From NCBI GenBank assembly GCA_028023455.1, contig JAQFVV010000004.1, positions 22,072,001 to 22,136,000 on the forward strand: DNA of 64,000 bases, read 5' to 3'. The position numbers and the translations under genes were made by a program. Position 1 is the first letter of the stretch, and every line of letters begins with the position of its first letter. The notes beneath the pieces were generated by a model, which ran no database searches, was not told the origin of the DNA, and saw only the letters and a list, made by a program, of their open reading frames with translations. This DNA comes from Epiperipatus broadwayi. Taxonomy: Eukaryota > Animalia > Onychophora. Shown one piece after another: positions 6,234 to 64,000 of the stretch.

Positions 6234-6857
6234 GTTCCATGTTGCAGTTCTAATACCAAAGTACCTAATTTATTTATATTAATTCATTTACAACAAAAAT
6301 AAGTAACATTTTACTTTCCATTTTAAAAAGATGTTTAATCCAAAACAATATTTTTATTTTTTAGATTTACTAAGCAGATCAAGTCTTTTCATGTCTCTTA
6401 AATTTTTTTGTTTTAAAAAAACTTATAGAAAGAGTTAAAGTAGTCTAATTGGTTACTTAAATTTCAAAATTTCAAATTGAGCCTAATTAATTAATTAGAC
6501 TATTCTAGCTATTTTTACAATACAAGTCTTTTAAAAGAAAAAAAGGTCAAAAAAGCATGAAAATGTTGATAATCTGTCTATTGACACTCAAGGTCCATGG
6601 ATTATGATTTCAGCTATCATTTCCAATGCTCAAACTTTCCAGTAATAAACCATTCCATTATTTTATTTTATTAACTATTGAAGCAATACAAAAAAAAATT
6701 TTTTCCATAATGCAGCTAAACTAAAATTAATAATATCTCTAGCAATAAGTAAATATTATTTAAATAAAATATTTTCTATAAAAAATAACACAGCTCCTTT
6801 ATCATTCCCACCTAAAATAAAAATAAAAATGTGGTGCTTAAATGCATTTTCTACATA

Positions 6858-9560: not shown

Positions 9561-10513
9561 TTATTTCTGCAAAAATTGATAACTTATTACTGTTATACTA
9601 CTACTTATAAGAATGAGTATTTAATATTTGTATTTTCTTGTTTTAAATAAGTTAATGTTTTTACAGCTTTTAATTTTAAAAAAAAAATTATGCAATTTTT
9701 TTTTAAAAAAATACACAATTGTGTTATTTTAAAAATGACAAGATAATCAAACATCATTTCTTAATAAATAAAAAATATTCACATTATTATTTATTTCAAT
9801 AACATTACTTTCTACCATTTTTTAAAATAAACTTTTATTAAATGTATATATTTGCTATTTTCTATTAAAAATTACTATGCTTCCAAAAGTTGTTTTTTTT
9901 ATTTGACCTGATAATTCTATCAAAATTGCAATCATTTCTTTAGAGAACGAGATTATTTACATGAGTATTCATTCTGTTGTACACTCCTATTTTCTCAAGG
10001 ACTATAATTTAAAACACAAATTTTTATAAAATATTTTTTAAAAAACAATTTACATATTATAGAGGCACACAATCTCTATATAGAAAAATTAGTTAATTTC
10101 TTGTAAAAAAGACTTATTTGTCTGCATACAAGAGAGAAATTATTTAATAGGTAAACAATATAACTATAATAATTAAAAGTTATTGTCATTGTGTGTATTT
10201 TTTTAATGCCATTGACAATTTGTAATCACATTGCTAATGTAAATACACTAGTTAGAATCATATCTTAATCACTGATACAATTAAACATTAGAATATTTTT
10301 TAAAAATTACAATAATTACATACATCTATAAATTATAAATGCTAATTATTGTATAATTCTTTTTTTTTATTTAAAAAAAAAAATTGTTTATAATCATAAT
10401 GCTATTCAAATTTTGCATTCTAATGCAAGTGTTTACAGTACATATGATTTTAAAAAATCATATATAGCCCAATATATCCAAAATATTAAATCAACAGAAT
10501 TGTAATATAAAAA

Positions 10514-11357
10514 GGTACTGTGGTATTAGAGCTGCGACATGAAGAATTATAATCGTTTAATCATTAAATTAATTAGGTTTATTAAATCAAAAATATATTT
10601 TAAAATCTACATTAAAAAAACAACAACAATTTAACAAAAGAAATTAGAAAAGCATTAATGTGAAGAATAGTTAAAATGCGTGTTTAAATCAAATTGAGTT
10701 TGTGTTTGCATGTGCATATTCTGCATAATCTATTTTAGTACATTGTACAAGCTTACACCTGCATTTATATATGTAATATATGTGGGATTCGAACTCAGAC
10801 TTTCACACGACCTACAACTTTCAGTGCCTTCTTATATTGCTGACTCACCTGATCACACACATGTTGAAAAGATAAATAATCACCAATATACATATTTTGT
10901 GCTAAACTAGCGGCTCAGATTACCATCTCCACACATATATACAAATAGTACTCAGCTTTATATTAAGATAACCGATCTTCATACTTTAATGAGTACTGGT
11001 TTAACACGAAGTACGTATATTGGTGATTATTTATCTTTTCAACATGTGTGATCAGGTGAGTCAGCAATATAAAATGGCACTGAGAGTTGTAAATCATGTG
11101 AAAGTCTGAGTTTGAATCCCACATATGTAAGCCTGTACAATGTATTAAAATAGATTATGCAGAATATGCACATGCAAACACACACTCAATTTTAATCTTC
11201 ACATTAATGCTTTTCATATTGTTTTTTTTTTGTTAAATTGTTGTTTTTTTTTAATGTAGATTTTAAAATATGTTTTTGATTTAATAACCTAATTAATTTA
11301 ATGATTAAACGATTATAATTCTAATTCTTCATGTCGCAGCTCTAATACCACAGTACC
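10514..11357. repeat. Foldback palindrome (~230-bp outer arms) enclosing the hammerhead-family element
   Basis: GGTACTGTGGTATTAGAGCTGCGACATGAAGAATT... (10514-10747) is inverted at 11136-11357. Near-identical 8-mers TATAAAAA (10506-10513) / TATAAAGA (11358-11365) flank it. Confidence 0.9.
10748..11135 (-). mobile_element. Decayed copy of the inverted-repeat hammerhead element
   Basis: Arms and core are homologous to 46043-46453 in opposite orientation. Retains stem II/GAA/stem III remnants (GTACTGGTTTAACACGAAGTACGTATATTGGT, 10993-11024) but lacks the intact CTGATGA core. Flanked by TA. Confidence 0.8.
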
Positions 11358-14013
11358 TATAAAGATGAATAATAATTATGTGAATTATTTTCATATTCTA
11401 TTAAATCAAAAAAATATAACAAATCAGTGACATGGAAAATGCACCTGCATTCCCTAATTAAAAACAAAAAGTTTCCCCATAAAGTATTTTTAAATAACTA
11501 TGTAAAAAAAAATATATGAAAAAAAAATGTTGTGGACAAGCTTTTAATCCATTAATTACAGTAAAAAAAGAAATGGAAACTGAATGTTTTAAAGATAAAA
11601 AGAGCAGTGGTCATTAATTAGTACATATGTCTATAGAAAAAAAAATCTGAAGAATGAGACCTTTAAAAGTAATACTTTAAAACATTTCCTTTAATTAAAA
11701 AATAAAATCAATGTATTCTACTAATTAAATAATTTTTTAGTAAAATTTAGAAAAATGATGGATAAACTACTATATATAATTGAAAAAAATTGCAAGGGAG
11801 AGGATGATTCTAAATATATGATTATATCATGCCATTTCCAGATTTAAAAAATAGATACTAAAATCAAGAACTGAAAAAAAAAAAGCTAAATTTAAAAAAG
11901 GAAAAAAGATATAGAAAAAATTTAAAAACTGCTGGAAATTTAATTAATAATATTCAAAATTAAAAATTTGATGTAATATTTATACATATTCAAAGTGACT
12001 CCTACTAAAGTAAAAAAAGACAGTAATGCAAGCAAAACTATTATTTTTCCAAATCTAGATTTTTTTTTCCTCCTCCCATTTGTTCTCAGTTGTAATCAAG
12101 ACAATAGCTTTGTAAATAACAATATATATACAAATTAAAGTAAATTTTTATTAATACTTATTAATATATACAAGTATAATATGGGCACCATTTAAATATA
12201 GTTTGTTTCTACTTTTTCCTCTTTTTTTCCAGTTGCTAAATTGGATGAAAAAAATGAAATTCAACTATTCTTAAAGTAATTGAGTAATTTACATTTATAG
12301 CAGAAAATGACAAAATAAAAGACAAGTATTTTAAAAATTAAATTTAAAATAATACTGTTTATCAAAAATCAAATGTAAGCTAAAAATTTCAACTTAAGAT
12401 CAGTACAAGCAATACATATACACATATGGACTAATATTCAGACTAATATGCATAATATACACAGGTATATATTATCATATACCCTCTGCCGAAGACAAGC
12501 CCAATAAATTTTTCTGTATGACTTATTTATAGAGTTATCTAAATGAAAATATATAGAATTATTAAACATTAATTAATGTATAAAGAACTTTAACAATAAA
12601 ATGATAGCCCATATAACCATATAAAGATTATTAAAACAAAAATTATAACTAACCAGAAGATACAAATTATTTTTTAAAAAAAAAAACTAATTATTTTTTA
12701 ATAGCTAGTAATAATTTATAAATTCAATAAAAAGTTATAGTTATTTTGTCAATAGTGAATTCATTGTTAATAATCTGACCTAAATTAGCATAGATTTATG
12801 AAGTGTCAATTTATCAAGTCAAACTACAGATTATAATAGAGGCAAATGCTAATCATTATTAATTATGTTGAATAAAAAAAAATTTAAATCATCAGTGAAA
12901 AACTACTAAATTATTATTAAAAACCCCTTTAAAAAATATTAATCAACCAAAATATAGTAAATATTAAGAAATATTCATTACTTTAATATATTTCCTTTTT
13001 ACCCTCCATAATTAGTGCAGTAATAGAGAGTATTATGAACTCCCTAGCAATAAAACGTTTTATTATTTCCCTTCTCCAAAATTAATTACAATATCTATGA
13101 TGAACAGGAAGCAAAAATTCCTAATTCACTTCTTTGAAAGAAAGAAAAAAACAATCCAGAAAAATTAAAATAAAAATTTTGTTCTAATAATCATAAGAAG
13201 TACATTAGTTCCCCAGCTGGCTAGATTTCCAAACCATAATTAGTCCAAAAAAATTAAAATATTTTTAAAAATCATAATAGTGGATTGAGATCTTTGACAA
13301 CATGATTCAGTATTATAATAAAATTAGTATGGGTCTACTGTCATAAATGATCATTGTAATATAGAAAATCAATATATTTCACTATTCACAATATGATTTT
13401 TGATGATGACTGAACAGACAAATCACATATGTGTGTGTATATATATTATCTACGTGCAGGCAGGTTTAAATATCAAGCTTTAAGGAAACAATGACCAAAT
13501 AACATTTTACTATTACAAACAATAATCTGGAAACAGCAAATCAATTTAGCAATTCCATGCTTAGTACTTAGGTTTCTGCCATGCCATTATTATTTAGCCT
13601 TTCAATGAATCACAACTAAGATTATTGTAATATTTCTACTATTACAAATAGACAGTGAGAACTAAATTGATAATTAAGGTTAAGCATTTAGATTTCACCA
13701 TTTTCACTGAACTTTCATTTTGAATTTTTTTTTATGTCTATATTAATAAGTTTTCAAATTCCACTTTTATGGCACATAACTAAAATTATTATAGTATATG
13801 CATGTAGAACATTTTTAAAGAAAATATATTTAGAATATTTTTATCTCTAGAGATAGAAAAAGACAATCAAACAAAATTAATAATTAAATTTTAATGCTTA
13901 GATTTCCACCATTTTCACTGTACTTTTATTTTGATTTTTTTTTTTTGACATAAACAATCAGCTTTCAATTTTTGCTTTTACAGCTTATTCTAGAGTTTCA
14001 CAATTTAAAACAA

Positions 14014-14341
14014 AAACAGCTCCCTATTTTATTGCTATTTAGTCAGTTATTACCAAGTGCATATATAATTCTTATCCTTAATATATGAATCCCATCCTCA
14101 GACTTGTATCTGGCTTTTGTCTTTATCAATGAGGCCTGGGATTCAAAGTTGCAATTAAAGGTGGTTGCTGAATGCATATGTGCATTTCTCTCAACTTTGA
14201 ATCCAAAGCCTCATTAATAAAGACAAAAGCTAGAAATGAATCTGAGGATGGAAATTCAAATACTAAGGATAGAACTCATTTATACATCTGTTAATCAGTC
14301 ATTATTCTATCTTATACAAATTAGCAATAGAGAACTGCTTT
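14014..14341. repeat. Diverged hairpin/MITE-like inverted repeat
   Basis: Inner arms 14069-14151 / 14192-14274 (GGCTTTTGTCTTTAT..ATGAGGC..GGATTCAAAGTTG and its complement), with weaker outer matches. Confidence 0.75.
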
Positions 14342-30553: not shown

Positions 30554-33042
30554 AAATTATAAAAAATGAAATAAAATTGTATTTCTTTTTCTTAAATAAA
30601 TTTTAAAAAATAATTTAATACATTATTTGCATTAAATAATGAAATCTAAAACATAACATAAGGAAAATAATGTTTTTCTTCATAGATTGAATAAGGATTA
30701 AATATTCTGATAAATAAACAATTAACTTAATAAATTAAAAATTAATATAAAAGCCAAGCAATTTATAAATGAATATTTAGAACAATTAAGTTATTTTTCA
30801 AAATACGCTGAAGCTATGATACACTGTATAATATATACTACTTCAATTATATACTATCCAAAAAAAAAAGTAAACAAAAATTAAAAACAATAATTCATAT
30901 ATATCTAAATTTTGTAAGTAGAAATCATATTTTGTCTCAGAGCCCTGTATGTAATTACATATATTCATTAATACATTTTGTTGGATTACATTGAAGCCAA
31001 ATTTTGATGTGATACAGGATTTAATAAAATGTTTTCTAACTTTTAGGTTAAATGTTTTACGAATTTTATGAAAATTTGTAACATCTCTTTCTTAAGTGAT
31101 AAAATAAAGTTATTGATTTAGTAGGCACAGAAAAAAGAACTGTAAAATGTTTTTGTATTGTAGCATAGATGATTTAAAGTTATTAACTGAGAATCTGAAA
31201 TGGGTAATAGTAGCAAATAGTATAACTGTATAAATTCTGAAGTCAATATAAAGTTAAAAACCTCAAAACCACAAGGCTACAGTCTGTTCATAATGAGGCT
31301 GCATTTATATTTTCATAAGAGAAAATTTTTTTTAAAGAAAATGGATATTATCCGGAATGTGTTTAATTGCAATCAAAATCTACTCATTTTATTTAAAAAA
31401 ATAAAGATGCATTATACTAAGTTTTTTTTATAGTTAATCTGATGAACACACACACACATAAAATATATACCTAAATCTGCTCCATCAATTTATTATATTA
31501 ATAATTACAGTATACAGTAATTGCCTGAAGGTTAATGATGATGGTATATTAGATGTAATATGAACTATTTCTCCACCATCTATCATTAAATATTTAATGT
31601 ATAGAAAATTTTAAACTTTATTTTCAAATTCAAACAATTTGTTAATAATAACACTAACCTATCTCGTCTATTTATATGTGAAAAGTTTAAAAAATTTTAT
31701 ACATTCAACATTTAATGATAAATGATGGAAATAGCCAAAGAATAGTATTCACATGTAAATAGAAATAATACATATTCTATTATAATCAAAGCTTTTCAAC
31801 AAAATTTGAGCAATTATGTAGGATGTATGCTCTAATATATAAAAGAATAGGCATATTAATTTTTTTTTTTTAAAAATCTCATGTATTTATTTTAAAATAT
31901 AAACTATTATAATAGACAAGCAAATAGAAAAGAACAAGTTTCACCAATAGTTCATAGTAGCTATCCAGTTTCACATTTGATTTGTGTAGTTGTTTTTAGA
32001 GAGAAGCCAAAAAGATCTATCCAATCAAAAAACACTGATTGTAGTAAAAATAGATAACAGAAATTCAAGTGCAAGAGAGATTGTAAGTATTATTATAATT
32101 TTTCTATACCTTAACAACATGAAACTCAATATTTCTATCAATGAATACAGCATAAAGAAGACTACTAGAACTGACATCTACGAGATAAATTTGTCATTGA
32201 AAAAGAAATGCCATCATATATGGATGAATAAGAAAACTGTAACAATCAGAATTGCTTATATGGAATACTAATCCTCCTAGTATATAATAATATAACAGAA
32301 AAAAGACAAGAAAAAGAAATTTCAAAGAAACAAATATCATCTGAAAGCAATTTAAGAACCCATAGGAATTGTTGACACAAAATATTGCAATATTGTATTA
32401 AAAAAATCTCTCTTTTTTTTTTTTTTCAAGAAAGCAATTTGAAGAAAAATATGTATTTATAATTAAGACATCTCATATATGACACTTCAAATCTAAATAA
32501 GCATATGAAAACTTTTTATACTGCTAATTGATAATATCAAAAATAATTATTTAAAATCCCCAAAAGAAATCATTTTGTATTTCTATATATTTTTTTAAAT
32601 TTCATATGTCTTTTTAAATTATTCTGCATTACATGCTTATCAATTTTCACTATATTAAATTATTATTACCACTTAGTGAAACAAATTAATTGAGAACAAG
32701 CTTTATTGTAAAGGATAGTGAAATAATAGCTTGAAGACTTAGATAGACTAGATTATATTTTCATATAGTAACTACCATACTTTATTCATTTTTATTTTAA
32801 CTAATCATTAAAATTTTTTATTATAAATTATTTATGGGACAACCAATTTTTTTTCTGTCATAAATCCTTTATATTACATATAAAATATGTGCTGATAATC
32901 TCTGAACCAATAATCCAAACTCATAGGTTAAGATAAATGTATAAAGAAAAGTGGGATTAGAAATATATTTCATTTAACAAATCTAAAAGTTTAGATTTTG
33001 ATGCCACATAGAATGAATTTTTAATCAATATTATATTTAAGT

Positions 33043-35272
33043 AAAATAGAAATAAAACAAACTAACTCCTTTTTAAATTTTGTTTTTTATATGACTATTA
33101 TTACATGAAAAAAAAATCCAACGTTTCAATTATTTTCTATAGTCTTTTTCACGGCACACTAAAATAAAATAATATATATAACAAATAACATACTCCATAA
33201 AAATAAATAAATAAACAAAAAATTACAAAATATATTCATAACCAAAAATATACCTTATCTCACTCCCCTTTCCTATTACCAACAAACACAACTCAAAGAG
33301 AAACAATTTCATTTTATTAAAAAAAAAAAATCTATATATATCCTTTAAAACATTTAATTAAAAACCTATTATTTTCTTTTCTGTTTATCTATTAACATCC
33401 TATTTAATTCTGGTTTTATTTCATTAATGTATACACTTTCTTTTATCATCCTTTTATTATATGAGTTAATACATTCCAAAGGCTTTATATCAAAATCCCC
33501 ATGCTTAAATTTATTCATGTGAATGTAAACAGCAGAATTTTTATCACCTAAATGCTGTTTTAAATCTAGTTTTTTAGATTAAAACAGCATTTAGGTGATA
33601 AAAATTTTGCTGTTTACATTCACATGAATAAATTTAAGCATGGGGATTTTGATATAAAGCCTTTGGAATGTATTAAGTCATATAATGAAAGGATGATAAA
33701 ACAAAGTGTATACATTAATGAAATAAAACCAGAATTAAATAGGATGTTAATAGATAAACAGAAAAGGAAATACACCTGGGTCTCTTTTTACGCGGACTTA
33801 TTTAACACGATTTTGAAGTTACGTGATCCGTCTTTCACCGGAAGTCGAAGTCCGATAATGCGCTATTACTTTAAATAATAAATTTCGCGCACTTACATTA
33901 TATTGAAAGTAATAGCACATTATTGGAATTCGACTTTCATTTTAGTAATTTCAATATTTTCAGTGCTTTATAATAGTAAGATTTTATGCAATAATAAAAT
34001 TAAAATCATGATTTCCACATTTTATGTATACACCCATTAAATTTTACAAGATTATAATGTAAATTTGTTCAAACATTGTGCGTGTTAATTTTGCATTTTA
34101 AATCACATTCTGTTTTTGCTTTTTAAAAAAGAATGTAATCAATTATTAATCATTTAGTGTCCACAAGTTTATTTTTAAAAGGTCAGTAATAGCAGTGGGC
34201 ACAATTAAAATCTGATTTTTAATTGTAATTAACAATTTAAAAATTACTTACGGGCAACTTGAAATTAATGTGATGTACAACAAAATTTGATTTTTAAACG
34301 GAATTGAAAATTAAAGACAAAAATAAGAAATTAATTTTTACTTGTTAGTTTTAATTAAATTTTTCCCAGCAGTAGTGAATAAATGTCTTTTTATTATCAT
34401 AAGTCTAAATCCATAAACAATTAATAAAATCATCGTCGTCATCAACAGAAAACCATTAACACAACATGAGAGTGAACTTGGCGCTAGTTATATTTCCTCT
34501 TGTGAGAATAATTGCTGAGATATTCTTAACTTCGTTTAAGGAGAAGCCAAATACATCACATCACATCACATGAGAATCTGATTTTTACTAGTTTGCAAAC
34601 GAACGTCTTTTTGGGCAAATAACGATAATAATTAAAACGTGTATAAAAAAATTTAAATTACTATACTATAAATTATGCATAAAAATATATTATTTTGAAT
34701 AAAATTAACTATTGTAGTTAAAAAAAGTTTGTCTTGCATCATTTTTTTTTCAAATTTGAAATTTTTTATTAGTCATATCTTATTTCCTTATTTTTTTTTT
34801 TGCGCGAATTTTAAAGTAATTTTACGTTGGTGCTTTTCTTTTATGCGAATTTTGAAAAATCACAGACTACATCCGCCCTTTTTCAATGTAAGTTACGTCT
34901 ATTTATCTATCGCGTAAAACGAGACCCAGGTGTAATAGGTTTTTAATTAAATGTTTTAAAGGATATATATAGATTTTTTTTTTTTTAATTAAAGGAAATT
35001 GTTTCTCTTTGAGTTGTGTTTGCTGGTAATAAGAAAGGGGAGTGAGGTAAGGTATATTTTTGGTTATGCATATATTTTGTAATTTTTTGTTTATTTATTT
35101 ATTTATTTTTATGGAATATGTGTTATTTGTTATATATATATTTTATTTTATTTTAGTGTGCCTTAAAAAAGACTATATAAAATAGTCGAAAGGTTGGATT
35201 TTTTTTTTTTCATGTAATAGTCATATAAAAAACAAGTTTTAAAAAGGAATTAGTTTGTTTTATTTCTATTTT
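33043..35272. repeat. Long near-perfect palindrome (~530-bp arms, 6-nt loop at 33569-33574) interrupted by a MITE
   Basis: Left arm 33043-33568 is the reverse complement of 33575-33772 plus 34933-35272. Confidence 0.95.
33773..34932. mobile_element. pogo/Tigger-like MITE, copy 3 (interior type B)
   Basis: TIR CACCTGGGTCTCTTTTTACGCGG / TCGCGTAAAACGAGACCCAGGTG. TA duplication supported by the empty site in the opposite palindrome arm. Confidence 0.93.
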
Positions 35273-37044
35273 CGATATTTATGAACTATTTTGAAAAGAA
35301 GAACTCTGTGCTTGATATATTAAATTATTATATTTAAGTATTATAAAATTTTGAAGAGAAAAACCAAATTCTAAATTTCAATATTATTGTAATTAAGCAA
35401 TTTTCTCGATTTCAACTTCCAGGCATATCACAGTTCAAATTGGAACTATTTCGAGGCTTATGCATAGTCAAAAAAATTTATGACAACAAACTATTTATAA
35501 AATGTGGCTCACAAAAGTATGATTTTATTACATATGTTTATTGCCCTTTAATTACATAATCATTTCATACATTTTTGGCATTCAAACTAAAAGTAATTTG
35601 GAGATTAATCACTGTAAGTATATGGATTATTTATTAATATATCCTAACCTCTCTATGTTTTGTACAATATATACAAATAGGAAATTCCACAGTATTAGAT
35701 CTAGAGTCGCATTTTCTATCAATAGCATGACAATGCTACATGTTTTTAACAGATGAAACTTTTTAATTATATAATGATTAAAAAAAAGTGCATAAACTTA
35801 AAAAGATATGGGAAATATATATAATAATTGATTAATACTTATAGTATATTTGTGACTATTACCTTTAAAAGCTCAGAAATAAAATATTAAATATTATATA
35901 ATTTACTATTGTTTAATATACGCATAATATGTTGAATTTTTATATTTTAGATGTACTACATATTGATTTTAAAAATATTAATAATAAAAAAACATCTAGT
36001 TCAGTAGCTTAAGACCTTTATTTGAGAAGATTTATCAGGTAACATTTAACATTAAGATTTAAAAAAACTCAAAAATTTAACTTAACTAAACTATATCTTT
36101 TATAACCTAATTTTTTGTAATGTTTTCAAGTTTACACTTTAAAAAATGCAATATTTAATATTTATCAGAAGAGAAAGAACTGTTTAAAATAATGAGAGAA
36201 CTTTTATTCAAAATTAAACAAATTATAATCTGACTTCAAATTAAAAATCCAAATTTTATTCAAATAATAAAATGATTAATGGGCTTTTTTTTTCCTACTT
36301 ACTAATAAAAAATTTATCAATTAATAGTATTAAATTAAAATAACATTAACTAACAGCAAAAAACTTATATTTTAAGTAAACTTATATAATGCTTCTATTT
36401 TATATTTTACTACACTACAAAAGTATGTTCATACTATTAAAATATTTTTAAAAATAAGTGACATTTGTTTTTAAATATTTGTTTAATTAAATAAAATTAA
36501 ATCCAGTAAAATCATTAATTAATAGTAATCACAGTAAGAAAATGAGTTGACAATCATAAAAATAATAATACTAAAAATAAAATAAAAATCCTCCTTGACA
36601 TTTTTACTTCATTTATTACAGATTTGTATACCTGATTAAGGTCAATATACAGTAATTATAACATTGACCATTAATACTTCAAATAAATAATTTTAAATAA
36701 ATTCTATATATAATTGTAAGCCATATCAATAAAAGATAATATACTGAATTGATAATACCACACTCTCTTTTTTTTTTCAACAGTTATAACTAAAATATTA
36801 AAGATATATTTAGTTTTGTATAAATATTGTATTAAAGCAACTTTTTAATTCAATTTTTATATATATGCAAGCATTTTCTTAAATATACAAAAGACATACC
36901 TATAATAATTAAAACATTAATGCCTTAGCAGAATTTGTTGGAATTTTCTAAAAATTATCAAATTTAGCTTGCAAATTAACTTTTTTTTTTAAAAAAAAAA
37001 AAAAAAAACACAACAGCATATACCTTAATTTTTGATATATATTT

Positions 37045-43623: not shown

Positions 43624-46178
43624 TTGTTAAAATATTAAAGAAAATGTAATGTCCCGGTAACGTTATATCGATGTGTTTTGTTTGGAAGAACAACGCCATC
43701 AAGCGGGATGAATTGTCATATGTATCAGTACCATAATTTCTTAGAAATAATTAATTATTTCAAATAATTAATTATTTCATTTCAAAAGGAGCATTTTAAC
43801 TTTTCAAAAAAAATTAAAAAGCTCTTTACATGAACTTTTTTATTTTACTTAAAACTCATAAAGTGATGATACTCTTTCTTTCCCTATTTCAATATTATTC
43901 CAGCATACTAACAATACATAAATCAAAAAACACACTTTTAAACTGGATTCCATAAAATGTAAAACTCGCTAATTAAGTCTTTTAATAAAACATAATTTTT
44001 TTTATACCTTCTGATATTCATTTTTTCATTGAGTTATAAAAAATTCTTCTGGATTAATAAAACATTAATGTTAATTGGTGTGTGCTTTATGAGTATTATA
44101 TTCAACCATTCTTTCTACTTTTTGGTGTTGATAATGTTTTAATGTTATTAGACTACTAATATTAAACAGCATTCCATGTAAACCCACGCCTTATTAAACT
44201 TTGGGTATCTTTTCTAATACATTACAACAACATGAGCTAAAATATTTTTAAAGCCATATTTGATTTAATTCTATATTTATTTATTCAAAAAAACAAAATG
44301 TGATCATTACAGTAACATTAGTTCTTACCAAAAAATACACATTTAAAATTCCATATAGACTTCAGACAATCTTTAAGTGCTTTAATTTTTAGTTCATTAT
44401 TTTAGAAAAAAAAACTTTAATAAAAAAACAATCACATATTAAATATCTGGTTCGTGGAAATAAATTAGTCTTTATGTATTAAGCATCTGTTAAGACATGT
44501 TACTAATTGCTGATAACTGAAGCAAATTGCAACACTATCTCAGAAGAGTTTGTTTTTAACTTACTCTATATATAACATTTGTAAATACAAGCTTTATTAA
44601 AATTAGGTCATCTGACTTGGATTTTTTATCAAGATAAATATAAATATGAAATTCAAGTTTATCTTTAGAAATAATTATCTGTGTAATATTAATGAATTTA
44701 TTAAATTCAGTCTAAAAAATTATTAGGATATAAGAAAAAAATGCACACTAAATATCACTCTATTATTACTATTACTAACAATATTATTATTTTCACCTAT
44801 CCATACAGTGATTTAAATCAACAATTGAAGATCCACAACTTACACTTACATTATCTATTACTATGGGTAATATAAATCCCCAAAAATGAATAAATTAAAC
44901 CTAATTACTATGAAAAAACTTTTAATAAAAATTAGGCTGTCTACATATCTGCTGCAATATGCATAACACTATGCTAATGAATACTTTAACTAGAATGAAA
45001 TCGAACTTACATGAAAAATTCCTCAATTACTACAATAAAATTTCTCCACTGTTGGTCATGGAGATATGCAATTAAGCAAAAGATTTTTGCAACATAGAAG
45101 CAAACTTACTCTTTCCCTATTGATATCTTAGTTATATTCAACATTTCATAATTTCTATGAAAATACATAACATTTTCAAAAGAAAAGCTTATCTTAACTG
45201 GGACATCAAATACAATCAGTATTTATTTGATTACATACACATATTTATATAGTAGAGTACATTTTGGAAATAAGCTATTAAATTGAAAGGGCTACTTTAT
45301 CAGTCAAAGATATAATTAGAAATCACTACTTAATTTTACTATTATTTATCAGTTATTTAAATATTTTTCTTCCTTCAAGCATTTAAAATTTATTTCTAAA
45401 TGTATCAAATTTAATGACTTTTATAAAATTCTTTTTTTTTTTTTAATTAAAAGTTTCTATTAGAACAGATTTTTTTTTTTTTTTAATGTCCTAAATTTTT
45501 AATAAAAAGCAAGGAGGACACAAAATATTAATCAGAAATTTTCTGAAATTAATACAATCTAAAAATAGAATACAGTATGACTGGAGGAGGTAAAAATTAA
45601 AAAAGGAAAAACTGGAAATAATCCAAAACTTATTATTCGTCATCATTGTGTTTCAGAACTTTTTTTCTCTTTCACTCTCTTATGAAAATACAAAATAAAC
45701 AAAATTCAATATGTATTTCAATGACTTTACATCCACAATATTTGTAAATATATGATTAAAATCAAACTTTCAATCCAAAAAATATGGTACAAAAAAATGA
45801 ACTATGTACAGATAAAAATGTTTGAATGATACATCATTCTAAAACTGATTTTAAATGCAAATCATGCATACTTAAATATTAAAAACAATTTTTTTTACAA
45901 ATAACTGAGAATGTTATATATAATTGAAACAACACCAATTAGTCTCATTGACAACTGAACTCTGAACTTTCTGTTGCATGATTTTTAAGAGTTCATCCAA
46001 AGCAAGTTAGATAGATATATAGTCTATAATAGCTGAAACACACAGGCTTATATATACCTGTGTCTATATATGTAATATATAGGGTATATGAGCACAGACT
46101 TTCACATGACCCGCCACTCTCAACACTATCTCATAACACTGATACACTCGAACACATATGTTGAAAAGATAAATAGTC

Positions 46179-46222
46179 ACCAATATACGTATTTCATGCT
46201 AAACCAGCAATCATCAGTTGGT
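46179..46222 (-). ncRNA. Minimal type I hammerhead ribozyme motif (minus strand)
   Basis: Reverse complement reads ACCAA CTGATGA TTGCT GGTTT AGCAT GAA ATACGTAT A TTGGT, identical to the plus-strand motif. Activity untested. Confidence 0.75.
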
Positions 46223-46298
46223 CCATTAAAGTAGGAGGTTGGGCTATCTTAATATATATCTGAGCACTTATAACATATGTGTAGAGATGATAATCTGG

Positions 46299-46342
46299 AC
46301 CAACTGATGATTGCTGGTTTAGCATGAAATACGTATATTGGT
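46299..46342 (+). ncRNA. Minimal type I hammerhead ribozyme motif (plus strand)
   Basis: Stem I ACCAA/TTGGT; core CTGATGA (46304-46310); stem II TGCT/AGCA with GGTTT loop (10.1-11.1 is U.U); GAAA (46326-46329); palindromic stem III ATACGTAT; AUA triplet with predicted cut after 46337. Stem I extends via ATAATC/GATTAT past a TGG bulge. Confidence 0.8.
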
Positions 46343-47559
46343 GATTATTTATCTTTTCAACATGTGTTCGAGTGTATCAGTGTTATGAGATAGTGTTGAG
46401 AGTGGCGGGTCATGAGAAAGTCTGTGCTCATATACCCTATATATTATATATAGTCTATAGTAATTATTATTACAAATTTCTTAGATATTGAAAATAAATT
46501 TATAACAGGGTCATATGAATTTGAACATGGATGCTATTTAATTTTAGATTGAGTTGTATCTACTATTCAAATTTTATTTGAAAGTGAATCATGAAATTAA
46601 ACATTATATAGATTTTAAAAATTTAGAAAATTAACAGTTTTAGCACAAGATATACATAAGAATTCACATGTATATCAATGATCCTGCCGAGATGATTTAT
46701 TGGCCCTATGAATAAGCAATAAAATATTTAGATTTATAAAAGAAAGTTTTAGTACATACATAGTGTTTACAACTGTTCATGTATACATGTACACATTTAT
46801 GTCATATGATCACTTTAAGATAATCTATTAATATTGGGTTTGGGAGTTCATAAAAAGACTGAGTATTGGAAGTGATAGAAAGAGCATGGTTTGAGTATCT
46901 ATGTTCCAGAGTCTGTTACTCTAGTACTCTAGCACTGTACCAAACTGGGCAAGGTATAAAAATATTTATGTTTAATGATAATACGCAAATGCCTTTACCT
47001 AATGTTTTATAAATATACATTTAGCATTCAAGATTCATAGAAAGCAATTTCTATTACCTTACTATTACAAGGTACATATTTCCACAAATGTCAGTAGTTA
47101 GAATTTTTGTCTTATATATATATATTGATGACATTTTGTTACACTTTAGAATAACTGAATAAAAAACAGTATTTTAATTAGCAAAAAGAAAAATACAGAA
47201 AAATTACTTAAATGTACCACTGTACACCTAGATATAAGTCAATTTTATATATATTATTATGTATAAATTAATCTGAAGGTCACATCATATTTAAGCTCTC
47301 TGGCAAGTTAATTTTATTACTGGGCTAACTACTCTGAATATTAAATATTAAAACTTAATTTATATTTAAAAAATGTGAGATAATTTTGCAACCATAGATA
47401 AAACATTTGACCATGTGTATTCCAGAGATGAGATCATAAATTTGACTAATGGAATAATAATTTAATTAAAACAAATTGCATCAATTAAAAGATATCATTA
47501 AAAAAGAAAAAATAAGAAAAAGATATCCATGGTGATAATTCTCAGAATAATATCAATAA

Positions 47560-49537
47560 AACCATTTGGCATTAAGGTATTAAGAGTCAGTGATTAAAGA
47601 TAAAATTTAACTTATATATTGCCACTACTATTTTCCAAAAAGTGCTCATCAATGGGACAGGCTGCTGTTTAAAACAGTAATAGACTCAGTCTGTACAAAT
47701 ATAAAATATGGGTCAGTTGTAATTAAGCTATAGACTGGCATGATACCAATTGATCTATTAATCAATGAATCAATAGAAACATTACTACCCTATTCAATAA
47801 TCTATTTTATTACAAATTTAAAATTGAACAAGGAAATACAAATTACTCTTAATGGAAAATATTCACCATATTTTATTCATTTTGATTCAATTCCACATGG
47901 TTCTTCACTAAGTGCCCTATTATTTGCATACGTCTATCCATTGAATAAAGCAATAAAAATGATTTGGCAGGAATATTCATACTTGGATTTAAAACAAATA
48001 TTCCATGTGTAGTATACATGGATGATATATTGATGTTTCTACATTGAAAAGATAAATTCCAAGATAGTTAAAAACTTTGCAAATTACAGCAACAAATACA
48101 AGTTTGACTTCAATATGGAGTAATCTAGTGCATGGTCTATTTACACAGGACCCTATCATGAAAAATACTTCAAAGGAAACAGCTCATTTGTAGGGTTTCC
48201 CTTTTATTTAATGAACATGAAAATGTGCTTACAAGTGCAAAGGAAACTTATAAATAAAATTGAGAGTATATAATCAATTCACTCTCCAAATTCTACTTAT
48301 CATTATATGCAAAAGTGTTCTATTTAATCTTTAAGTGATGACCAGGAGTTATACTTCCGTAATTATATACAGCAAGGCATTCTCATCAAAAATTGATTGC
48401 TTATGTAGAAAGCTATTGTAGAGTTTGGGAGTGGGGGAGGGGGGTGTTCCACAATATCAATTAAATTAATTCAAAATCCTCTAGTGCAAAATGAATTGGG
48501 GCTACACTCAAAATATTTCAAATTCAAGAAGCGCTCAATCTATAATCTTGAAGTAATCTTTAAAATTATACCTACCACCCTTTTACTGGGTATTTAAACA
48601 CTCTCCTTTTTAACATTGTTAAAACATTACAAGTTTAGTATTCTGCACACCTAGAAATAAATATAATTATTGGGAAGTCTACATATTAATCTTTCCACCT
48701 TCTCCAAATGACAATAATAAACCCTTTTAAACATAAACAATTAACCAAAAAATTTAAATTCTGGTTACTAGAACTTAAATACTATGGCTTTCTTCTTGGA
48801 AGTGCTACCAACTTTACATTTTTTCAGATATAGAAGGAATTGCATTAACACAGATGATATATGCTGGTCTTGCAATAAAGAATCAGAATTGCAATCACAA
48901 ATTCTGTTTTCATGTTCTATATTAGATTATATTCAATTGGTCATTCCCAAATTTTTCAAAAATAAAAACTGTACCATTCAAACACTTATTTAATCTTTTT
49001 TGAAAGGTAACTGTGAACAAATTAGGGGCAGTACATTTGCATTATTCTCGATAAAGCATACTAGATGTACAATTATATATATAATTCAAACACAAGACAG
49101 CTTCTCAATACCTTCTGGAATAAAATCAATATAATAAGATTAAGGGATAAAACAATTTCACTATCAAACATTTACGCATGAACTTGATCATTAATCCAAC
49201 AGCACTCAAGCTTATAACATGACATATTTTATCAAAAAAAATGGTGGAAAAAGAAATTGGATGAAAGAACAGTGGAAAGTAATTAGTTGCATATAATGTA
49301 TAATGATATAATATACAAGAACCAAGAATGTATATCTGCTACTTTGGACGATATTTTGGAGTTTCATCTTTATATAAATAACATTATTTTTTTGTTTTAT
49401 TTGATAGGATTTATAGGTTTGATATTTTGTTCTTTTTTCTTTATGTAAATATTATGTTGTTACTTTTTTACATATTTGTATTTTGTACAATCATTAAGTT
49501 CAATAAAGTTTCTTTTGAAAAAGAAAAAAGAAAAAAA
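47560..49537 (+). mobile_element. Tx1/L1-like LINE, 5'-truncated and decayed
   Basis: ITLNGKYS..., PHGSSLSALLF (47893-47925), VYMDDILMFL (YMDD 48015-48026), LSLYAK and C-terminal LPT...CWSC..E...ILFSC knuckle (48862-48915). AATAAA (49502-49507) followed by an A-rich tail to 49537. 5' boundary approximate. Confidence 0.75.
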
Positions 49538-62100: not shown

Positions 62101-64000
62101 TCATCTGAAAAGAGTTGTTTATGATTCATGAAACTGAAGAGTATAATCAATGATTAAAAGTGGCAATATACTCATTATATCATAACAGTTAAATAAAGTT
62201 TGAGTGAATGCATACTTTTCTCACATAATCATGACAGCAACAATGATTGATTATGGCCAGTGATTTAATGCAAGCAATCAATTATGCACTTATACAAAAT
62301 CAAAAGATAACATGAAAGTTTTAGAATTTAGTGAAATCTCTGATATTAACAAAAGCAATATATATATATCAATGCCTTTTGATAATAACAAAATAACAAT
62401 TTGAATAAATATTTCCAAACATTTTTTGGAATATGAATTTTAAACCAAGATAGATAGTTCAACTGAGCCACCATTCAAAAGTTGAATTCAAGCTAATAAT
62501 TTTTAAAATTGTACATGGCTATTATCATTAATGATATAATAAATCAATTTATTCTCTAAAGATGTTATAACTGTCTTGCATGATTTATTAGCCATTTAAT
62601 TTATTGTTACAAATGTTTTACAGAGTATTATTAAAAAGTAAATAATAAAAACAATGTGTCTGTACTGTGCAATAGAAAAATTTTAAGTTTGTTAATGTTT
62701 AATTATCTTATTGATAGCATGTTTTTTCCCCCTAATGATAACTGCAAAGTATCATTGAAAGTTATTGGAATGTCTGCCAAAGTACTTAACTAATGCTTAA
62801 TAAGTACCTCAGAGTTAATGATATCAAAAACAAGGAAAGAGAGAATGGTCAGAGGAAGATAGTTACTTCCATTTCAATTATAGATATTTAAACAAAGTCA
62901 TGATTCTTATTAACTAATGTTAGTTTTTTTTATATGAGAATATTGGAATATTTTTATTTATCAATCCAATGACTTATCAAATTTATTGGTTGTTTGACTG
63001 ATTGTAACATTATAAAAATAATTGTAATAATAAAAATGTTCAAAGAAGTGTATATTGTAGTTTTGATATTTCAATTAAACAAATAATTTAAAGAGTTTTA
63101 TATTTACTTGTGAAATTCTGACGAATATTTTTACTATGATGAGAGATACATAAATTAGATACTATTAGATTGTCCCAACTATATGATTTTTTCATTTATA
63201 AGCATGCTTTAGTTTATTCTGAGAAAAGATTTTTGAGATGTTTTAAATATTGTTTCATGCTAGTAAAATGATTAGCATTTTAGATATTTTCTTTTCTTTT
63301 ATGAACTAATATGCATTTAAGCTGATGTAGAATTCACTTTAAATTCAGCTGACAGGATTGATAAATTATTTTCTCCTCTTTCCATAATTACTTTCTTATT
63401 TCCCTTGAGTAATGAAATCAATTTTATTTAACATTTCCACAATCTGTCCAAATGAAAATATAAAAAATAAAAATATTTTTTCATATACCGTGAGATCTGC
63501 TAGAATAAAAACTTTAAACTGTGTAACAAACACTTTTTCTCACTAAATTAAAATTAAATAATAATTCTACTTAATAACTGTAAACACATTCTTTAATCAA
63601 AATGTTATACACTAACAAAACATTATATGATCTCTACCTATACATTATTTTTGAATGACTAATCTACTTGTGTAAGCTTGAATAATCAGTAAACATCAGA
63701 TCACAATACTTAATAAATCCCTATCCAGTGCTGTCTATCTATATCTACAGATTGGTTTCTAGTTTATGGCCTTTATTAAGTATTATCATCTAGCATCTAT
63801 TGATTATTCAAGCATACATAAGATGGCAGAACTGGAGGTGGACAAATAAATTTACTACTTAAAATTAATATGTAGCAGAGATCATGTGATATTATGTTTG
63901 TATAAATGTTACATGAAAATATCTTTGCCGTGCAAGGCTCAAATTACACATTTAGTTTATATTTTTTGTATCTTTAACAGTGAAAATATACTATACTAAT

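Follow-up and report, generated by a model that had tools for sequence, protein, structure and literature searches.

Is a palindrome with a hammerhead ribozyme motif on each strand a ribozyme arrangement of a new kind, or is it the footprint of an integration event? The question is raised by a locus in a stretch of 64,000 nucleotides of the Epiperipatus broadwayi genome (below, the window), for which an earlier note proposed a distinct "inverted retrozyme" design with one ribozyme per strand. The analysis points strongly to another explanation: the region 46032-46455 (copy 1) very probably arose by a single insertion of a short retroelement of about 235-270 nt that is non-coding and carries a hammerhead, a retrozyme-like passenger of Penelope-like elements (PLE).

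Arms, ends and insertion footprint

The palindrome of approximately 400 bp with one hammerhead motif per arm is real. Two pairs of arms were identified by the inverted-repeat search, 46067-46157/46362-46452 (98% complementary) and 46154-46225/46296-46367 (97% complementary), and a gapped alignment of the arms contained 163 matches, 3 mismatches and small indels (98.2% identity). The limits 46064-46453 given by the earlier note are to be corrected, as the element occupies about 46032-46445/46455. The features of copy 1 are as follows.

46015-46031, left target-site duplication (ATATATAGTCTATAATA), a 17-nt direct repeat with contig depth still at the flank level
46032-46066, minus strand, one-sided 3' "tail" of the minus-strand copy, from the arm alignment; AC-rich hairpin in the fold
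46067-46225, minus strand, short arm, a 5'-truncated copy with the 3' end leftward, from the inverted repeats and the arm alignment
46179-46222, minus strand, hammerhead-like motif of the short arm, without the distal part of helix I
46221-46295, plus strand, "unique centre", the 5' extension of the long (plus) copy, collinear with the long arm of copy 2
46283-46358, plus strand, full helix I of the long arm: 5-bp proximal stem, UGG internal bulge and distal stem (46283-46295 with 46343-46357)
46296-46445, plus strand, the part of the long arm shared with the short arm, 3' end rightward, from the inverted repeats and the alignment
46299-46342, plus strand, hammerhead-like motif of the long arm, found by descriptor and exact match; predicted scissile bond 46337/46338
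46446-46462, right target-site duplication (ATATATAGTCTATAGTA), a direct repeat of 46015-46031

The 70-nt "loop" between the arms is the extra 5' sequence of the longer (plus) copy. The short (minus) arm is truncated 3 nt upstream of helix I, and its junction with the centre lies inside the shared GTCC at 46221-46225. The end of the long arm is ambiguous within 46445-46456, as ATATATAG is common to the target and the element. The unit, that is, the long arm together with the tail, is about 235-270 nt long, is non-coding and contains one type I hammerhead motif. Two statements of the earlier note hold here. The element is ORF-less, only mechanical ORFs of 43-48 amino acids being present inside the unit, and a read-through RNA would form a long hairpin: when copy 1 is folded as a single RNA, its energy is -294.5 kcal/mol (z = -33.7).

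Both edges of the two-arm structure carry a 17-bp target-site duplication, identical at 16 of 17 positions. At random places of the window, flanks of this kind contain an equally good repeat in 0.03% of cases (chance about 0.0003). The GC content of the window is about 25%, and the insertion target is AT-rich. The tail of some 30-35 nt belongs to the left arm only, the arm alignment containing no counterpart on the right; in the fold it forms an AC-rich hairpin, ACACAGG...CCTGTGT. It is family sequence, as the loose-end consensus ...CTGAAACACAGGCTTAT is found in the sequencing contigs coded X1, X5 and X6. Copy 1 thus has the features of a PLE insertion: an inverted 5'-truncated copy, 3' ends facing outward, a one-sided tail of 30-40 bp, and a long target-site duplication in AT-rich DNA. 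The idea, also put forward in the earlier note, that the element was mobilised by PLE machinery is supported by this footprint with its target-site duplication, one-sided tail and head-to-head twin.

No ORF encoding reverse transcriptase (RT) and GIY-YIG domains was found in or near the element or anywhere in the 64-kb window, and therefore the element is classified as non-autonomous. The sole nearby RT remnant, at 47.7-49.0 kb, is a weak zf-RVT match (E 0.02, under the Pfam cutoff) that looks LINE-type.

The hammerhead motif

An identical 44-nt string resembling a type I hammerhead is present in each arm, on opposite strands, as previously described. A relaxed type I hammerhead descriptor matched two sites in the whole window, 46299-46342 (plus) and 46179-46222 (minus); in 200 Markov shuffles there were 0.03 matches per 64 kb. 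The 34-nt core string has two occurrences in the 64 kb, 46184-46217 (minus) and 46304-46337 (plus), against an expectation of 0. All conserved core positions (C3-A9 CUGAUGA, G12-A13-A14, A15.1-U16.1 and H17) are in register in both arms, and three helices surround the core, helix I being open and helices II and III closed. The register assigned earlier could be reproduced in full: the 5-bp helix I, CUGAUGA, helix II, GAA, the self-complementary AUACGUAU, and A46337 as H17. Helix II has 4-5 bp. Helix III has 2 bp closed by an ACGU loop, or 8 bp in a dimer, in agreement with the proposal of a dimer-prone motif based on the self-complementary AUACGUAU.

Only the plus copy has the extended stem I that had been ascribed to it, the energies of the 81-nt folds being -16.8 kcal/mol for the plus arm versus -8.3 kcal/mol for the minus arm. 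The full helix I was taken from the fold of 46280-46360. The 3' strand of this helix belongs to the block in which copies 1 and 2 agree best, and to the family bin with the highest depth. The hammerhead fold of the plus arm is not the minimum-energy fold (-11.6 kcal/mol when enforced versus -16.8 kcal/mol).

The G10.1-C11.1 pair at the base of helix II is absent from both arms of copy 1. Both contain the U.U mismatch at 10.1-11.1 that had been pointed out (T46311 at 10.1 and T46325 at 11.1), and because it is shared, the U.U state was probably already present in the template RNA. The mismatch had been suspected of lowering the activity. This concern is softened by the published axolotl ribozyme HHR_Amex2, which has U.U at the same place and is active.

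A covariance-model search, suggested in the earlier note as a check, did not recover the motif: RF00163 and the related hammerhead models of Rfam yielded no match at the gathering score, and none at E<=10 for either 721 nt or 90 nt. The only Rfam matches of the element are long-hairpin plant miRNA models, all far below the gathering score. The matches to MIR868 and MIR4208 mirror the long hairpin only, and these identities were rejected. Identity with C/D snoRNAs was rejected as well, the weak Rfam matches reflecting UGAUGA/CUGA boxes. Neither the conserved 24-mer nor a degenerate core was matched when metagenome contigs were scanned with exact patterns. Among the relatives, two loci could be aligned, and the core of copy 2 is lost. 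Single helix changes that preserve pairing are an A>G that copy 2 shows in distal helix I and the ACCAG of a loose-end consensus.

The second copy and the repeat family

The window contains a second copy of the element (copy 2, 10745-11135) in the opposite orientation, with 78% identity to copy 1, a broken core and arms that are 87.9% identical to each other. It is older than copy 1. The following features were delineated.

10745-10992, minus strand, long arm of copy 2, from the alignment; 5' end agreeing with that of the copy 1 long arm to within about 4 nt
10989-11135, plus strand, short arm of copy 2, 5'-truncated inside the core, starting at about ATGAGTACTGG
10513-11358, larger palindrome enclosing copy 2, with outer arms 10513-10745 / 11135-11358 that are 97.6% identical

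In the long arm of copy 2, CUGAUGA has been lost to an internal deletion of 11 nt. The short arm retains G at 10.1 and C at 11.1, and C at 11.1 is present in both arms. The differences between the arms are mostly G-to-A (sense); a bias due to RNA editing or cDNA deamination was considered and rejected as not significant given the base composition and the GC-to-AT bias of the genome. The short arm ends 12 nt further in than that of copy 1, and therefore copy 2 is an independent insertion event. The centre of copy 1 and the long arm of copy 2 are collinear (78% identity), and both long arms start within about 4 nt of one point. Such a shared start is not predicted by random 5' truncation; it fits either a defined 5' end of the unit or a unit that moves as a palindrome.

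The position of copy 2 at the exact centre of the palindrome 10513-11358 is not predicted by a simple insertion model. A terminus of 29 nt closes the outer arms of this palindrome and is found again at 6238-6266. Another palindrome bigger than a single element was observed at 33018-35297.

One could suppose that a solo retroelement copy was made palindromic later, by fold-back repair or inverted duplication of DNA. Indeed, palindromes larger than single elements exist in the window (10513-11358 and 33018-35297), and, to judge by identity (97.6% versus 87.9%), the outer arms enclosing copy 2 seem younger than its inner ones. However, a later fold-back would replace one flank and therefore destroy the target-site duplication, whereas the complete two-arm copy 1 is flanked by 17-bp repeats. 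Moreover, the 3' positions of its arms differ, and they match two PLE start sites. We consider a secondary origin of the palindrome highly improbable.

The family was found in runs of several coded organisms (X1, X5, X6 and X15 among them). The data are Logan contigs and not reads, so that junction counts are small and depth is not equal to copy number. The summed contig depth is 0.4-12.3 million inside the element versus 30-130 outside, that is, 10^4-10^5 times that of the flanks, with sharp edges at the predicted element ends. At the right edge it falls from 792,292 (bin 46428-46451) to 6,065 (bin 46452-46475). In the runs marked "RNA?" the element is present and the flanks are at 0; these are contigs of small libraries, so traces of DNA (10^4-10^5 copies) would look alike. 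The motif region is the most abundant and the least variable part of the family in several organisms. The substitution 46311 T>G, producing G at 10.1, accounts for 58% of contig depth in X1, 47% in X5, 60% in X15 and 13% in X6; taken together, G at 10.1 makes up about half of the family depth. The large share of U10.1 in the family, together with the axolotl precedent, makes the question of cleavage worthwhile.

In X1, 223 contigs continue 5' of 46221 with conserved sequence, and the same is observed in X5, X6 and X15. The contig consensus across 46275 has the same order as copy 1. Opposite-strand junctions occur elsewhere in the contigs, at 46135/46367, 46159/46350, 46159/46357 and 46277/46312. 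The sequence that longer copies carry ahead of the unit was compared with the element tail, as expected for a tandem array; of three consensus strings, only one exceeded the 99% level of the shuffles.

These data bear on the possibility that the whole palindrome (arm, loop and arm) is the mobile unit and carries a ribozyme per strand by design, the hairpin masking the ribozyme and feeding RNAi. The extreme stability of the hairpin, the collinear centre and the long-arm 5' end common to copies 1 and 2 are all compatible with such a unit, and a transcript of either strand would bear a valid 3' end. On the other hand, the short arms of the two copies stop at different points, many contigs run 5' past the junction with conserved sequence, and other junctions exist in the family. 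The ends are asymmetric, with a one-sided tail, and an identical layout is known as a by-product of PLE integration. We thus regard a palindromic mobile unit as improbable, and the distinct "inverted retrozyme" design of the earlier note is not upheld: the centre is simply the 5' continuation of the plus copy, and the layout corresponds to the published footprint of PLE insertions.

The overall look of the locus is that of a MITE, or of a foldback DNA transposon whose terminal inverted repeats are long; the hammerhead-like motif would then be there by chance or by hitch-hiking. The plant miRNA models that provide the sole, sub-gathering Rfam matches are built on MITE-like hairpins, and copy 2 resides inside a structure with TIR-like ends. 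However, asymmetric ends and a 17-bp target-site duplication are not features of DNA transposons, and copy 1 has neither symmetric terminal inverted repeats nor a short target-site duplication of fixed length. Chance or hitch-hiking is also at odds with the expectation of 0.03 motifs per 64 kb, with the abundance and low variability of the motif region in several organisms, and with the survival of G10.1 and C11.1 in relatives. Of the explanations considered, a DNA transposon appears the least probable.

Origin of copy 1 and its relation to known elements

The insertion unit of PLEs comprises a pLTR with a hammerhead and an inverted truncated upstream copy (Evgen'ev & Arkhipova 2005; Arkhipova 2006; Craig et al. 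2021, PMC8557442; Mob DNA 2024, PMC11167929). An inverted 5'-truncated copy is frequent in PLE insertions, as is a tail of 30-40 bp confined to one end (PMC8557442). Both target strands are cut and extended by a purified PLE protein, which starts reverse transcription at two adjacent internal sites that delimit the tail and prefers AT-rich DNA and an AC-rich stem-loop; hammerhead cleavage is not required (PMC11167929). Copy 1 is similar to PLE units in its head-to-head arms, outward 3' ends, tail at one end with an AC-rich stem-loop, long target-site duplication, AT-rich target and hammerhead in the 3' region. It differs from them in that no RT/GIY-YIG ORF lies between or beside the arms, and both arms are copies of a non-coding unit of about 250 nt. 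Mobilisation by a PLE is the most likely origin of the element, and there is good reason to believe that copy 1 is a known kind of PLE integration scar and not a new ribozyme architecture.

From the published PLE biochemistry, we infer the following scheme. A PLE RT/GIY-YIG protein would introduce staggered cuts, 17 bp apart, into the two strands of an AT-rich target, and reverse transcription of the element RNA would be primed from both nicks. A start at the distal RT site would yield the arm with the tail of about 35 nt, and a start at the proximal site the tailless arm. One cDNA would extend to about the 5' end of the unit, giving the plus arm; the other would halt just before helix I, giving the minus arm. 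The two cDNAs would then be joined head to head in the 4-nt microhomology. The product would be a palindrome with both 3' ends, and hence both hammerheads, facing outward, and the 70-nt "loop" would be a mere difference in length between the two copies. The hammerhead of the source element presumably processes multimeric transcripts, and the two motifs of copy 1, in the proposed view, are passengers without a role as a pair.

Explaining a striking palindrome as an ordinary scar guards against its annotation as a MITE, a microRNA hairpin or a new ribozyme. Copy 1 is a very clean and young example, with arms that are 98% identical and an intact target-site duplication, and the end with the tail and the end without it correspond to the two RT start sites known in vitro. 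It fits the two-strand target-primed model of PLE integration and ties a retrozyme-like non-coding family to the PLE machinery.

In the literature, animal retrozymes are held to be non-autonomous PLE derivatives, the published support for this link so far being co-occurrence and pLTR similarity. Like metazoan non-LTR retrozymes (Cervera & de la Pena 2020, PMC7229834; Li et al. 2026, bioRxiv 10.64898/2026.07.22.740005), copy 1 has a non-coding, low-GC unit of a few hundred nucleotides with a type I hammerhead, a helix I interrupted by an internal loop and a 2-bp helix III whose tetraloop is palindromic (AU-ACGU-AU), and its family shares with them a target-site duplication of more than 4 bp and a very high copy number. 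The U.U at the base of helix II is likewise found in HHR_Amex2 of this group. The unit falls in the retrozyme range of 170-400 nt and contains one type I hammerhead. However, the defining features of retrozymes are tandem repeats in head-to-tail order and circular RNAs, whereas the units of copy 1 are inverted and are known here from DNA.

It may be, although we lean against it, that the family is a true animal retrozyme (a unit of about 250 nt, a type I hammerhead and a helix III tetraloop) whose insertions bear all three PLE hallmarks, namely an inverted twin, a long target-site duplication and 3' start sites that are fixed, the tail being optional. If so, this would be direct structural evidence that PLE proteins mobilise retrozymes from a defined 3' start site. 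Mobilisation would then use linear or multimeric RNA instead of entering rolling circles at random, and every such integration would create a long-hairpin locus that could seed small-RNA silencing of the family.

The inverted pair as such is not novel, since opposite-strand hammerhead pairs are already published: Schistosoma mansoni has dual minimal hammerheads 100-700 bp apart on opposite strands, there attributed to truncated PLEs (Cervera & de la Pena 2014, PMC4209133). Copy 1 is analogous in having an opposite-strand pair. Its motif differs from the S. mansoni ones, with a short helix III and without the extra nucleotide. Twin priming of L1 reportedly also involves reverse transcription from both target strands and leads to an inverted 5'-truncated structure within one target-site duplication. 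The parts are said to be different segments of one RNA, mutually inverted, that do not form a palindrome of two 3' ends, whereas copy 1 is such a palindrome.

Palindromic element and candidate hammerhead motifs

The element at about 46032-46455 (copy 1) carries a 400-bp palindrome, as claimed in the earlier note. Gapped alignment of its arms gives 163 matches, three mismatches and a few small indels (98.2% identity). Folded as one RNA molecule, the sequence forms a single hairpin (-294.5 kcal/mol, z = -33.7). An inverted-repeat search, and an exact search of the window for the 34-nt string from CUGAUGA through the predicted cleavage-site A, gave the following features.

46067-46157 and 46362-46452, outer inverted arms, 98%
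46154-46225 and 46296-46367, inner inverted arms, 97%, 70 nt between them
46184-46217, minus strand, 34-nt core string
46304-46337, plus strand, 34-nt core string

These are the only two exact occurrences of the string in 64 kb, where none is expected. A relaxed descriptor for type I hammerheads (helix I of at least 4 bp, CUGANGA, helix II, GAAA, helix III, UH), tolerating one mismatch at 10.1-11.1, likewise matched only the two copy 1 motif sites in 64 kb, against a background of 0.03 per 64 kb (200 shuffles). Direct reading confirmed the register described before, including U.U at 10.1-11.1 (T46311, T46325) and A46337 as H17 of the plus-arm motif. A search with the Rfam hammerhead models found no match, whether judged by gathering score or by a limit of E<=10 applied to 721 nt and to 90 nt. 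The hammerhead fold of the 81-nt piece is not its minimum-energy fold (-11.6 vs -16.8 kcal/mol), which is usual for dimer-prone animal hammerheads (PMC4209133).

[quoted passage not shown] The U.U mismatch is indeed present. By analogy, it would not by itself signify a dead ribozyme, because the axolotl HHR_Amex2, with about 60,000 motifs bearing U.U at the base of helix II, cleaves (22% in one hour as a monomer, better as a dimer; PMC7229834). The fold also agrees with the claim that only the plus copy has an extended stem I: distal helix I with a UGG bulge is confined to the plus (long) arm, because the minus (short) arm is truncated 3 nt short of helix I.

Insertion anatomy and a second copy

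Copy 1 is flanked by a 17-nt direct repeat, 16/17 identical, at 46015-46031 and 46446-46462; a repeat as good occurs in comparable flanks at 0.03% of 3000 random places in the window. This target-site duplication (TSD) is almost palindromic (TATAGTCTATA), which may, speculatively, hint at a preference for palindromic targets. The left arm reaches about 35 nt beyond the right arm (46032-46066), with a small AC-rich hairpin in the overhang. From left to right, the order is thus TSD, tailed arm, head-to-head junction, tailless arm, TSD. The exact right end could fall anywhere within 46445-46456, as ATATATAG is common to target and element there. A later fold-back duplication of a solo copy conflicts with this layout, as the TSD encloses both arms.

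A second family member (copy 2) was found in the window.

10745-11135 (approximate limits), opposite orientation to copy 1, about 78% identity to copy 1

The long arm of copy 2 is collinear with 46221-46455 of copy 1 through the whole 'unique centre'. From this collinearity the 70-nt centre is the 5' continuation of the plus copy, with no separate loop. The short arm of copy 2 stops 12 nt further in than that of copy 1, within the core (about ATGAGTACTGG), and the differing junctions indicate that the copies are independent insertions. An unlikely alternative is that the whole palindrome is the mobile unit. The only point favouring it is the long-arm 5' end common to both copies, which a defined 5' end of a unit of about 250 nt explains equally well.

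Copy 2 is the older of the two, since its arms share 87.9% identity, compared with 98.2% in copy 1. In the long arm of copy 2, a separate deletion of 11 internal nt has removed CUGAUGA; G at 10.1 is retained in the short arm and C at 11.1 in both. Transitions account for 14 of the 17 inter-arm differences. Polarised with copy 1, the differences are mostly G-to-A on the sense strand of the element, an excess that is not significant given base composition and the GC-to-AT bias of the genome.

The 35 nt directly 3' of the predicted cleavage site, covering the 3' strand of helix I and sequence past it, are identical in the plus-strand arms of the two copies (46333-46367, 11015-11049), only 78% alike overall, and at 46333-46367 fall in the highest-depth bin of the public DNA run X1. 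This suggests that the block matters to the element beyond the ribozyme core.

Copy 2 lies at the exact centre of an 845-bp palindrome (10513-11358). The outer arms (10513-10745 and 11135-11358) are 97.6% identical with several indels, against only 87.9% for the inner arms, which bear the hammerhead motifs. The outer arms end in a 29-nt terminus (AGGTACTGTGGTATTAGAGCTGCGACATG), perhaps the end of a separate repeat family.

10513-10541, plus strand, terminus ending an outer arm
11330-11358, minus strand, terminus ending an outer arm
6238-6266, minus strand, terminus with 3 mismatches and no partner nearby

Copy 2 may have landed in the middle of a palindrome that was already there, a 3'-transducing (read-through) template may have been copied on both sides and strands, or a later fold-back extension may have occurred.

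The family in public sequencing runs

Four runs, all Logan contigs, which show presence and not absence, were compared with 45900-46600 at 80% likeness. In X1, from the same organism, 54,631 contigs matched. The flanks have a summed word depth of 30-130, compared with 0.4-12.3 million inside the element; this measure is not copy number and is taken to indicate no more than 'thousands to hundreds of thousands'. The sharp depth edges (bins 45996-46019/46020-46043 and 46428-46451/46452-46475) coincide with the limits predicted from the TSD. Small 'RNA?' libraries from organisms A, B and G also contain the element sequence, with flanks at 0. Element 31-mers (46032-46462) occur in small libraries of about ten organisms (shares 0.14-0.44), and thus the family is common to related species, nearly unchanged.

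To the left of 46051, loose contig ends share the consensus ...CTGAAACACAGGCTTAT, before which the letters are AT-rich and agree poorly; the tail therefore belongs to the family and ends there. Conserved sequence extends 5' of 46221 in 223 X1 contigs and in others from X5, X6 and X15, indicating that longer copies of the unit exist. In some contigs opposite-strand joints lie elsewhere (46135/46367, 46159/46350, 46159/46357, 46277/46312), so the family also has head-to-head junctions with different truncation points.

G at 46311 (position 10.1) makes up 58%, 47% and 60% of contig depth in X1, X5 and X15, respectively. A at 46333 (helix III), at 42% of depth in X1, is CpG decay. Among 40 of 96 differences, the 44-nt motif varies only at these two positions, and the tail varies at many. 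Identification of copy 1 as a MITE conflicts with this conservation of the motif region, with the 17-bp TSD and with the asymmetric ends.

Relation to Penelope-like elements

All structural features of copy 1 map onto published PLE insertions. The latter are strongly 5'-truncated and often partial tandems; an inverted 5'-truncated copy often adjoins the 5' end, producing inverted repeats; a tail of 30-40 bp is often present at one end only; and hammerheads are located in the pLTRs (Craig et al. 2021, PMC8557442). In vitro, the protein of an Anolis PLE cuts both strands of the target and extends them. Reverse transcription begins at two neighbouring internal sites, and the sequence between them constitutes the tail; hammerhead cleavage is dispensable for insertion (PMC11167929). 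Copy 1 contains one non-coding unit twice, head to head inside one TSD; the 5' ends are unequal, the 3' ends are of two kinds, about 35 nt apart, and the target is AT-rich.

By inference from the Anolis data (PMC11167929), a PLE protein would nick the two strands at positions separated by 17 bp and prime cDNA synthesis from both nicks, with element RNA as the template. One side would use the distal start site and the other the proximal one, and the two cDNAs would be joined via a 4-nt microhomology (GTCC, 46221-46225). The twin outward ribozymes are then a by-product. The twin-hammerhead palindrome reported in the earlier note stands as an observation, and its interpretation as an ORF-less 'inverted retrozyme' with one ribozyme per strand stands only in part. 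Under this mechanism, the 98.2% arm identity would reflect a young insertion and a common template pool, not homogenisation. Since U.U occurs in both arms, it was already in the template; such a template would fit the reported dispensability of cleavage for insertion (PMC11167929).

Dual minimal hammerheads on opposite strands, 100-700 bp apart, were already described by Cervera and de la Pena (2014, PMC4209133), who saw truncated PLEs as the source of dispersed motifs. [quoted passage not shown]

No autonomous PLE was found within the 64-kb window. A possible decayed non-LTR reverse transcriptase remnant lies 1.3 kb downstream of copy 1 (47740-48993, plus strand). One ORF piece contains a IPHGSSLSALLF motif that resembles RT by eye, and gives no Pfam match; in the next, a zf-RVT match is weak and below threshold (E 0.02, 16 bits vs a cutoff of 27.5). 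On this match the remnant looks LINE-type, not Penelope-type.

A young palindrome at 33370-33772 (194-nt arms, 97% complementary, 15-nt spacer) contains no hammerhead motif by the type I descriptor and is nested in a larger inverted repeat, 33018-35297 (arms about 33018-33371 and 34933-35297). Two more short palindromes, 14092-14251 (60-nt arms, 87%, 40-nt spacer) and 63667-63822 (51-nt arms, 80%, 54-nt spacer), come from unrelated sequence families.
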